A DNA stretch of 64,000 bases, taken from the IMG/VR virus record IMGVR_UViG_3300017917_001342, positions 454,644 through 518,643 of that record, one strand, 5' to 3'. A model generated the notes under the pieces. That model was given only the letters and a program-made list of their open reading frames with translations. It was not told the DNA's origin and made no database searches. The translations under genes were made by a program, and so were the position numbers. Below are positions 44,081-47,000 of the stretch, piece after piece. The number at the start of each line of letters is the position of its first letter. The stretch's first letter is position 1.

Positions 44081-47000
44081 ATGACAATAGACCCAAATAC
44101 CATTAACACACAATTTCCTGTTGCCAATCAAGACAATGACAGTCAGGGGTTTCGTGATAATTTCTTAGCTATACAGCAGAATTTTGCTGCGGCAAACGTT
44201 GCGATAAGCGGTTTACAAGCTACCACTATAGGTATGACAGGACCTGTCTATACTGCTATTCCTGGTAACTTGGAAGCTAGCAGTGTAACTCTTGTCACGC
44301 AGTTTAAAGAAAGCACCGGTGATTTTACGCTTACCTTCCCAGGTACAAGTGCTATAAAAATTCCAGTTGGTAACAGTAGTCAACGTCCTGCACCTGCACT
44401 TGGTCAGATACGTTACAATACTGATAACAATCAGATAGAATATTATAATGGTGTAAACTGGTATCCAGTTGGTCCTACTGGTCCAATTGGCCCTGCTAGT
44501 ACAGTAACTGGTCCTACAGGTCCAGCAAACGGTATAACTGGTGCAACAGGTCCACTAGGTCCGCAAGGTGTACCAGGACAAATGGGTATGCCAGGTATTC
44601 CTGGGCCTACAGGACCGACTGGCGAAACAGGCCCTACAGGTCCTACTGGCGACACTGGTCCAACTGGTGCTACAGGTCCAACTGGATTCACTGGTCCCAC
44701 TGGATTTACTGGACCAACTGGACCAACAGGATTTACAGGTCCCACTGGCGCAACAGGTCCAACTGGACCGACTGGTGTAACAGGACCTACGGGTGTAACG
44801 GGTCCAACTGGTATTGGTATTCCTGCAGAACCGGTTCGCTCAGTCCAATTTAATGCTGGCGGTAATGTGTTTGGCGGCAGCAGCTTAATGACATTTGGCT
44901 ACGATAACGTATTCAATGTCAACAGTTTGCGCAGTAATAATTTAGAAATTGCAAACAACATTATTCGCAATAGAATAAGCAGTGCAAACGTTATATTGCA
45001 AACAGATGCCGACGGCGGCGTACTTGTAAGCAACGATCTCTATGTTAACGGTATGCCACATGGTACTGCACCTTTTGTAACAGGTGTTATGTATGTAACT
45101 ATGGACGGCGACGACAACAACAGCGGGTTGTCAGAAGACCGTGCAAAACGCACTATAGCCAGTGCTGCATCGGCTGCGGCATTCCTGATTGCAGATCCCA
45201 GCACACCTTGGGTTTATGTAACTATCTATGTAAGAGCGGGTGTATATGTAGAACCAAACCCAATAACTGTACACAGCGGTGTCACAATATTTGGCGACAA
45301 CCTGCGTAGTGTTACTGTTGAGCCAATGAATCCCTATAATGATATCTTCTGGCTCAATCCAAAAACATATCTCTACGGTATGACATTCAGAGGTCACCGT
45401 TATCCTGCTGCTGCTGTGCAATTCCCAGAAAATGGCACAGCGATCATCAATGATCTACACGATTGGGCATCACCTTATGTTCAGAACTGTAGTTCTATTA
45501 CTCTGGGAAAATACGTAAGTGGTAACAGCGGAGAACTAGAATACGAAGCTGGTACTGGTATGATCGTTGACGGGGTCCGCGGTCGTAAATTAAGTACACC
45601 GGATTTTGGTAACGTACAAGTTGCAACATTTAACACATGGACTAGCGGTAATACCGCAGTGTTCTATAGTGACTATGCACCAACCTACGCAGGCAATGTT
45701 GCAGTTGGATGGCTGTTGCAAAGTGGTATAGAAGGTACTCCGGTAGTTGTAACATCTACATCGAGCACAACACTAAACGGTTATCCTGCATTCCAAGTTT
45801 CATTTGATAATGAATTCTTATATAACCTTGTAACGGTTGACGAGTTTGACAATGTTCTTACATCCACCAGTGCATTGATCTATGACAACACCAGTCCTGG
45901 TTTTGGTGACACTGTATCAAGTGGATGGTATTTAGAAAATCCTGCAAGACCGGGATTTGTTAACGCATCCACTATACTGCGTTATAATATACCATTTATA
46001 CAAGCACAGACTGTTGCATATGTGTTAGCAGAATTCCCAGGTGTAATTTTTGATGTTGACATCTGTGCAAGAGACATAGGCTATATTGTTGATGCAGTAT
46101 GTATCGACATACTAGCAGGCAATTACAAAAAGAGTACCGAAGCAGGGTATGCATATTACAATGGCGTAACATTGGTATTACCGTCAAACACTGTGCCTGC
46201 AACTGTTGCAGCTATTCAATTTGCAAATCAAATTGCACAGACTGTAATTACTAATACTGGTTGGGATGTTATATACGATCCATTTGTAACACAGGTATAT
46301 AAATTCCAACTAGGTGGTGGCAGCATTGCAGTAGATCAGGTTGCAACTTGCTTCAATTTAGTTGATGAAATAATCACCAATTGCCCAGACAATCTACCGC
46401 TTGAAAATGCTCAGAGATTGATGATTAGCAACCGCAGATTTGCACAAAATGAAGTTGTTGCATATGTAAACGCAGAATTCCCAGGTACGCTTAACACAGA
46501 TATGCTGACTAATCTCTGCTACAGAGATGTAGGTTATCTCTGGGACGCTATTACATATGACACATTCGATGGTGGAAATGCGCAAAGTGTAGTAGATGGA
46601 TTATTTTACTGGGATGCAAATAACAATACTCGTATTCCAGGAGAAATTCCGCAGACTGTTGCAGCAATTCAATATGCTAAACAATTGGCAATCAACGTAT
46701 TAACCAATACACAAACTGCACCGCTGTATCAAACCGACGTTACACAGGTAATAGATACCAAATTAACTGGTGGTACAGTTGTAGTACAAAAAGCTAGCAA
46801 TCTCTTTGATGTAGTAGCTAACATTGTACAAAATGGCCCAACAGTTGCACCTATAATGTGGAACACACCTGGACCGGGTACACTGATCAGTAGTGTGACC
46901 TACATACCAGATTACGACTGCATGACTGGTAACAATGCATGGCTTATAGAATTTGCAAATCCGTTACCTGGTAGTAGTTGGGATTTCGAATTGAAATATC

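Follow-up and report, generated by a model that had tools for sequence, protein, structure and literature searches.

Carrier Gene and Domain Architecture

The 64,000-nucleotide stretch of IMG/VR virus record IMGVR_UViG_3300017917_001342 considered here (positions 454,644 to 518,643 of the record; hereafter, the window) contains a gene on its + strand, at 44081–48403, that encodes a collagen-stalked, tail-fiber-like protein of 1440 amino acids in which two phycobiliprotein-like domains stand in tandem. Phycobiliproteins build the light-harvesting antennae of cyanobacteria and of some algae, and a few cellular paralogues of them are known. The exact protein is present on contig Ga0192394_117770 of the Joint Genome Institute (JGI), which comes from a pond metagenome and is 518,643 bp long; the window is the final 64 kb of this contig. 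An earlier note on this DNA had drawn attention to the two domains and had proposed that they bind a bilin on the phage particle, which might then be pigmented, light-responsive, or photoprotected.

The same note's description of the gene product as a putative virion protein stands. The carrier protein matches tail-fiber families of PHROG (phrog_17885, E 2.3e-76; phrog_5342, E 2.1e-53) as well as phrog_4527, "short tail fiber", all of them among the tail-fiber and baseplate families of that database, and it has virion genes for neighbors. Its sole Pfam match above cut-off is a collagen segment (PF01391 Collagen, E 3e-12), a Gly-X-Y stalk that is also plain on inspection of the sequence at 44471–44836 on the + strand (amino acids ~131–252) and that would presumably make the carrier a trimer. 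At the far end of the protein is a C-terminal domain (47957–48400, +; amino acids ~1293–1439) that coincides with the best stretches of phrog_3442 and phrog_17885; it is common to all of the giant homologues, and the same motif closes the multi-repeat relatives P0001, P0027, and P0037. Some multi-repeat relatives open with an Mtd_N domain (major tropism determinant N-terminal; PF18454, E 4.7e-10; amino acids 5–46 of P0037), which may be read as a further sign that these are receptor-binding fiber proteins.

Between the stalk and the C-terminal domain lies a beta-rich domain that has been split in two. Its first half (45077–45595, +; amino acids 333–505) matches amino acids 74–216 of P0037 by BLASTP (E 2e-43), and its second half (47090–47365, +; amino acids 1004–1095) matches amino acids 216–290 of the same protein (E 7e-23). 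Since the matched segments adjoin in P0037, amino acids ~506–1003 of the carrier, with both phycobiliprotein-like repeats, constitute an inserted cassette within a conserved beta-rich domain. In other relatives, the repeat units are placed elsewhere than in the carrier. An AlphaFold2 model of amino acids 300–1130, built with 14 orthologues, had a predicted local distance difference test score (pLDDT) of 48.7 and was confident solely over the two repeats (~75–92 for repeat 1). Judged by eye, the split domain that flanks them resembles a beta-helix.

Repeat 1 occupies 45956–46399 (+; amino acids 626–773; hmmsearch domain score 268 bits) and repeat 2 occupies 46400–46852 (+; amino acids 774–924), both delimited by a hidden Markov model (HMM). 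These HMM-set limits (nucleotides 45956–46852) differ by no more than 7 nucleotides from those first proposed, 45962–46399 and 46400–46845, whose 146 and 148 residues align over their full length. The claim of two tandem repeats of ~145 amino acids is, thus, well founded, with 37% identity over 145 residues (BLASTP E 2e-29). The cysteine codons are also where they were said to be: 46064 is TGT, encoding Cys662 in DICARDIGY, and 46517 is TGC, encoding Cys813 in NLCYRDVGY. The resulting motifs, Cys662-Ala-Arg-Asp (46064–46075, +; verified at the codon level) and Cys813-Tyr-Arg-Asp (46517–46528, +; placed by HMMER against the PDB and by hhalign), are the counterparts of Cys84-x-Arg86-Asp87 of phycobiliproteins.

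Fold and Homology to Phycobiliproteins

The predicted fold of the repeats is that of phycobiliproteins. An alignment of 54 diverse repeat units (A1) was the input for AlphaFold2 and for profile comparisons. From it, a template-free model of repeat 2 was obtained with a pLDDT of 94.3, a predicted template modeling score (pTM) of 0.90, and six helices. When this model was searched against the PDB with Foldseek, phycobiliproteins filled ranks 1–15 and almost every other place down to rank 48, with template modeling (TM) scores of 0.55–0.73 and a probability of 1.00, bearing out what the earlier note had anticipated of the fold. The matches span phycoerythrin, phycocyanin, allophycocyanin, the ApcE domain, and smURFP at sequence identities of 14–19%, and the best of them is phycoerythrin beta (2vjh_B, E 9.8e-4, TM 0.70). 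Ranks 16 and 28, the exceptions, went to two chains of the globin sensor DosC.

Profile comparison leads to the same place. Against the PDB, the A1 profile ranked alpha-phycocyanins at the top (E 0.066–0.78) with the repeat Cys in register with Cys84. Against five phycobiliproteins from cyanobacterial plasmid records (CpcA, CpcB, CpeA, CpeB, and one allophycocyanin), hhalign gave A1 a probability of 92.5% and an E of 5e-7 over 89 columns, in which positions 5–94 of the repeat run along residues 38–135. Control profiles, one reversed and 20 column-shuffled, reached at most 1.2% (E ≥0.045); the similarity is, therefore, not due to chance, and a homology that had been judged by eye is upheld. In the hhalign register, Asn784 falls on Asn47, Cys813 on Cys84, Arg815 on Arg86, and Asp816 on Asp87, while Gly818-Tyr819 falls on Gly89-Tyr90 and Gly831-Gly832 on Gly102-Gly103. 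Asn47, Cys84, Arg86, and Asp87 are invariant in the five phycobiliprotein classes, and their counterparts are four of the most conserved positions of the repeat.

The motif that the earlier note had given for alpha-phycocyanin agrees with a real CpcA (..KFPY..) from a cyanobacterial plasmid record. The note's match near the C-terminus was right as to the order of the matches and wrong as to place: T-V-A-A-I-Q-[FY]-A of the repeat aligns to V-E-A-V-x-x-M-K at residues ~127–135 of phycobiliproteins, on helix G rather than at the extreme C-terminus.

Among the single units, PF00502 was the sole recurrent Pfam family, found in 9 of the 54 (best E 1.2e-4), and in multi-repeat relatives it rises above its gathering score of 22.2 bits (P0013, 41.4; P0001, 37.7; P0037, 28.8; P0027, 24.8). 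A phmmer search of the PDB with both repeats returned no match at E ≤10, and taken with the profile matches, this means that the relation is visible to profiles only. A search of the ESM Atlas gave only noise (best score 0.65, to penicillin amidase fragments).

The repeat also departs from phycobiliproteins in ways that bear on its assembly. It has no counterpart of the X-Y hairpin (residues 1–37), the hhalign match starting at residue 38, and the equivalent of Arg93 is Asp822 (86% Asp across the family). Arg93 pairs with Asp13 across the alpha–beta interface of phycobiliproteins. A heme globin was also considered and set aside: neither window repeat has a His, and across the 595 repeats His is conserved at no position, making heme ligation unlikely. 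We conclude that the repeat is a divergent globin core of the phycobiliprotein type with a motif nearest that of alpha-type subunits, and the presence of a homologous phycobiliprotein fold on a virion protein can be regarded as highly probable.

Conservation of the Putative Bilin Site

Conservation was counted over 595 full-length repeat units and, at the level of the whole protein, over 13 orthologues of the carrier. The Cys-x-Arg-Asp motif, which the earlier note had called intact, is so in both repeats and is conserved throughout the family. The most conserved positions include Asn784 (98%), Asp816 (97%), Arg815 (96%), Gly818 (94%), and Cys813 (92%), and Cys813 of repeat 2 is invariant in 13 of 13 orthologues. 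Cys, Arg, and Asp occur together in 543 of the 595 units and Ser-Arg-Asp in another 20; units with Phe, Trp, or Leu in place of the Cys have usually lost Arg and/or Asp as well. Exactly one Cys is found in 467 of the units, and the overall Cys content of the proteins is 0.75%. Arg86 and Asp87 are the residues that hold the bilin in phycobiliprotein structures. A lone conserved Cys beside this pair, in a Cys-poor extracellular protein, argues that the pocket may still be in use.

Repeat 1 has a second Cys, Cys674 (46100–46102, in DAVC[IR]D), 12 residues past Cys662. Of the 13 orthologues, 11 retain this second Cys, including those in which Cys662 is Ser, and only the two most distant, P0084 and P0086, are without it.

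The family has two repeat subtypes, RD[VI]GY...SGVYYY and RDTGL...FAGLQYW, which follow fixed orders in many proteins of 2437 amino acids. A strict alternation of subtypes like that of alpha and beta subunits was looked for and found no support, as adjacent pairs were differing in 170 cases and the same in 179 (49% differing vs. an expected 39%).

A Repeat Family of Cyanophage Virion Proteins

The two repeats belong to a large family. A search with amino acids 620–930 of the carrier returned 187 proteins, mainly of 1400–2500 amino acids, many of which have a precomputed match to PF00502 (Phycobilisome). A seed HMM delimited 1036 repeat units in 121 proteins, with up to 16 per protein, and a profile search of 1.84 billion representatives found 1590 proteins at E ≤1e-3 and 695 at E ≤1e-30, the 1590 being metagenome representative clusters at 50% identity. 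The largest family proteins reach 6382 amino acids with ~40 units, so that copy number ranges from 2 to ~40 per protein, and repeats across the family are ~30% identical to each other. A search for free-standing single-domain relatives (83–264 amino acids) yielded no such form, only 10 fragments on contigs of ~1 kb.

Among phage isolates, the distribution is narrow. A unit from phage P-HM2 matched 349 of 50,697 phage records at 1134 places. Apart from one single-cell entry that is called "Marine virus" and has no annotation, every matched record is labeled as Synechococcus, Prochlorococcus, or cyanophage. Likewise, tblastn of the carrier against the same records found phages of Synechococcus and Prochlorococcus and picocyanobacterial single-cell "marine viruses", all at <60% identity, and megablast of the carrier gene against the phage records gave no match. 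In S-PM2, the domain occurs at eight places; in P-HM2, it occurs in PHM2_086 ("gp7") and PHM2_096 ("tail fiber protein"). The domain is, in fact, nearly universal in cyanomyoviruses.

For all its abundance, the repeat family is named neither in the databases Pfam, NCBIfam, and PHROGs nor in the records examined. NCBIfam has no model for the repeats, and relatives in isolates carry the label "virion structural protein". The same fold is present in BFVD in proteins of S-PM2, S-CAM1, S-WAM2, S-ShM2, and Syn30, none of which is named for it. A literature search, with subscription journals outside its coverage, found no description of phycobiliprotein-like domains in phage virions.

Comparison with Known Systems

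Phycobiliproteins themselves (PF00502), especially alpha-phycocyanin and other alpha-type subunits, share with the phage domain a globin-type helical fold, a domain of ~150 amino acids, Cys84-x-Arg86-Asp87-x-Gly-Tyr, the Gly-Gly turn of helix E, and Asn47 in register. The phage domain differs in lacking the X-Y hairpin, in having Asp for Arg93, and in its 14–19% identity. Moreover, phycobiliproteins are free subunits of 160–180 amino acids, whereas the phage domain forms tandem repeats in virion proteins of 1400–6400 amino acids and has a putative bilin site. We regard it as a new, viral form of the phycobiliprotein fold and would not call it a true phycobiliprotein.

For a phycobiliprotein domain housed in a large scaffold, the closest parallel is ApcE, the core-membrane linker of the phycobilisome, which likewise has a phycobiliprotein domain within a large multidomain protein (Foldseek 4xxi_B, TM 0.61). 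It differs in being cellular and in having one such domain together with linker repeats. ApcE binds its bilin without a lyase. By analogy, lyase-free attachment would be the simplest route for the phage protein as well.

Another comparison is with the bilin biosynthesis-associated globins (BBAGs), which are phycobiliprotein paralogues found in heterotrophic bacteria (Rockwell et al. 2023, PMC10151467). Like the phage domain, these are phycobiliprotein-related globins that occur outside phycobilisomes. Unlike it, they are free-standing, cellular, and defined by linkage to bilin-synthesis genes, a linkage that the carrier does not have within the window. In PMC10151467, phages are mentioned solely for PcyA and PcyX.

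Also related are the giant fiber and baseplate proteins of T4-like cyanophages, including S-PM2, P-HM2, S-RIM2, and Syn9, which have the same repeats, C-terminal domain, and collagen segments. They are labeled "gp7 baseplate wedge", "short tail fibre", or "virion structural protein", and the repeat is named in none of the records examined. Compared with them, the carrier is a short member with two repeats, from freshwater, and on a contig whose 518,643 bp far exceed the 170–250 kb of the isolates.

Surroundings of the Carrier and Source of the DNA

The carrier lies in a virion gene cluster. Upstream, on the - strand, are two virion structural protein genes (41866–42660, phrog_13138, E 3.2e-39; 42657–43190, phrog_12928, E 4.4e-39), followed by the immediate divergent neighbor, a phoH-like gene (43206–43976, -; PF02562, E 2e-68). 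Downstream is a giant collagen-like tail-fiber gene (48855–56759, +; 2634 amino acids) that matches tail-fiber families of PHROG such as phrog_5073 (E 5.7e-113); its product is mostly collagen Gly-X-Y repeats together with repeated units of ~100 amino acids. The antisense and out-of-frame open reading frames over this gene and over 44443–44780 are artefacts of repetitive codons. Two further collagen fiber genes occur at 27024–30120. Near-identical DNA is present in pond and freshwater metagenomes. The source is, thus, a jumbo or mega phage of fresh water, as yet uncultured, whose fibers resemble those of cyanomyoviruses and for which we infer a cyanobacterial host. No tRNA was detected in the window.

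Several other genes of the window deserve mention. At 36295–37518 (+) is a gene for a 407-amino-acid protein like the RuBisCO large chain (PF00016, E 2.5e-39; PF02788, E 2e-7); its neighbors encode a nucleotidyl transferase, a DUF7796 protein, and two GT2+TPR proteins, and it looks like a RuBisCO-like protein within a sugar-modification cluster. Nucleotide and queuosine-type genes, encoding thymidylate synthase, dihydrofolate reductase, a QueF-like protein, and GTP cyclohydrolase I, are found at 1–5000, in the 13959–14552 region, and further upstream, alongside several radical-SAM/SPASM proteins and a DUF2201 metallopeptidase/VWA pair. A double AAA+ chaperone of 764 amino acids resembling ClpB/ClpA is encoded at 30723–33017 (-; PF07724, PF10431, Clp_N), and a peptide deformylase is encoded elsewhere in the window.

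Possible Function of the Repeats

The explanation that we favor is that divergent globin domains of the phycobiliprotein type are carried on a cyanophage-type fiber and take up bilin in the infected cell. The repeats correspond to the phycobiliprotein core from about residue 38, lack the X-Y hairpin at the N-terminus through which alpha and beta subunits pair, and belong to a family seen, among isolates, only in fiber and baseplate proteins of cyanobacterial myoviruses. As a pair, they sit in a cassette of ~500 amino acids within a loop of the beta-rich domain, downstream of the collagen stalk, and a trimeric stalk would then display six phycobiliprotein-like domains per fiber. The strong purifying selection on the site equivalent to Cys84/Arg86/Asp87 suggests that the pocket still works. 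Bilin would most likely be taken up while the protein is being made in the infected cyanobacterium, with a thioether link to Cys813 in repeat 2, and it might be held non-covalently where repeat 1 has Ser. The bilin might attach autocatalytically, as it does in ApcE, or with the help of a host or phage lyase, and the virion would then bear chromophores on its fibers. Taken as a whole, we consider this statement about evenly balanced between right and wrong, and on the sequence, actual binding of bilin by the repeats may be placed a little short of that.

A number of observations weigh against this explanation. The search for bilin genes that the earlier note had proposed came back empty for the 64-kb window, where PF01126, PF05996, and PF06206 (heme oxygenase, bilin reductase, and CpeT/CpcT lyase) were not detected among ~50 open reading frames, and pigmented cyanophage particles are not reported in the literature searched. 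On their own, the two window repeats score 17.5 bits against PF00502, under its gathering score. The conservation of the cysteine, complete among orthologues in repeat 2, breaks down in repeat 1, where Cys662 is Ser in 7 of the 13 orthologues with Arg-Asp-x-Gly-Tyr invariant; conservation of Arg and Asp is, thus, independent of the thioether. A non-conserved cysteine was among the refuting conditions named in the earlier note, and this one holds in part. In addition, a fiber subfamily of P-HM2 (PHM2_096) has Cys-x-Asp-Asp in place of Cys-x-Arg-Asp. Finally, Asp827 (100%), Tyr843 (97%), and Gln889 (93%) are conserved in the repeats without a phycobiliprotein counterpart, and such near-invariant, phage-specific residues could be parts of a network whose role is structural only and to which Arg and Asp also belong.

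Much of this would be accommodated if the fold were derived from phycobiliproteins and carried no pigment, serving instead as a rigid helical block that lengthens or stiffens fibers and baseplate arms, or that binds the host surface, with Cys-x-Arg-Asp retained for folding or for inter-domain contacts. The wide range of copy numbers, reminiscent of spacer modules, and the varying position of the cassette between proteins would suit such a role, as would the Ser and Cys-x-Asp-Asp variants, the phage-specific invariant residues, and the lack of bilin genes in the window. Yet a polar pocket normally drifts once its ligand is lost, and here Arg and Asp remain at 96–97% in repeats that have diverged to ~30% identity. 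The lone Cys is likewise retained in 92% of units of Cys-poor extracellular proteins, the three residues tend to go together when they go, and confinement of the family to cyanophages would be unexplained if any helical spacer sufficed. An unpigmented module is, nevertheless, a substantial possibility in our view, if on balance a doubtful one.

The strong conservation of the site, and its location in fiber and baseplate proteins expected to touch the host, would also be explained by a functional pocket for some other ligand, such as another tetrapyrrole, a carotenoid, or a component of the host envelope, with the domain as a receptor-binding module. We consider this very unlikely, since the conserved triad is exactly the one that phycobiliproteins use for bilins, neither repeat offers a His for heme, and nothing positive points to another ligand. 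Chance or convergence, in which an unrelated helical repeat happens to share a short phycobiliprotein motif, could appeal to the marginal scores of single repeats (17.5 bits in Pfam, E 0.066 for the PDB profile, nothing with phmmer) and to the low identity to phycobiliproteins, and is extremely unlikely given that independent lines arrive at one register, that a template-free model matches almost nothing but phycobiliproteins, that the hhalign match (E 5e-7) has clean controls, that multi-repeat proteins pass the PF00502 cut-off, and that the four conserved residues N47, C84, R86, and D87 coincide with invariant phycobiliprotein columns.

Returning to bilin-bearing fibers, a possible point of contact with phage biology is adsorption. 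Adsorption of S-PM2 has been shown to depend on light, independently of host photosynthesis; that of P-HM1 is also light-dependent, and P-HM2 does not adsorb in the dark. As the domain is nearly universal in cyanomyoviruses, its presence or absence is uninformative for the adsorption phenotype. Besides the domain, P-HM2 has genes for a bilin reductase (PF05996, E 5.7e-17) and for a homologue of CpeT (PF06206, E 4.4e-12). To our knowledge, its host, Prochlorococcus MED4, is without phycobilisomes. The cpeT homologue of P-HM2 immediately precedes, in the same orientation, a run of fiber-like genes encoding a YadA-domain protein and a "tail fiber protein" (PHM2_034/035); the phycobiliprotein-like unit was found in none of these fiber-like genes. 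One could go further and propose that bilin chromophores are present on the fibers and baseplate of cyanomyoviruses and that the phycobiliprotein-like domains are the phage's own light sensor, a proposal that we think unlikely. If true, it would account for the need of S-PM2 and P-HM1/P-HM2 for light in adsorption, as well as for the retention of bilin-synthesis genes and a CpeT homologue by phages of phycobilisome-less Prochlorococcus.

Significance

What these repeats represent is a large, unnamed branch of the phycobiliprotein fold, used as repeat modules in cyanophage virion proteins and with its bilin-site residues under selection. Their recognition makes two old puzzles testable: the identity of the light-sensitive component in light-dependent cyanophage adsorption, and the use to which phages, those of Prochlorococcus above all, put their own heme oxygenase, PebS/PcyA, and CpeT. 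Should no bilin be bound, the family would clearly illustrate how a virus can exapt an antenna fold of its host as a structural module, and it would still provide a ready annotation for hundreds of giant proteins that are now called "hypothetical".

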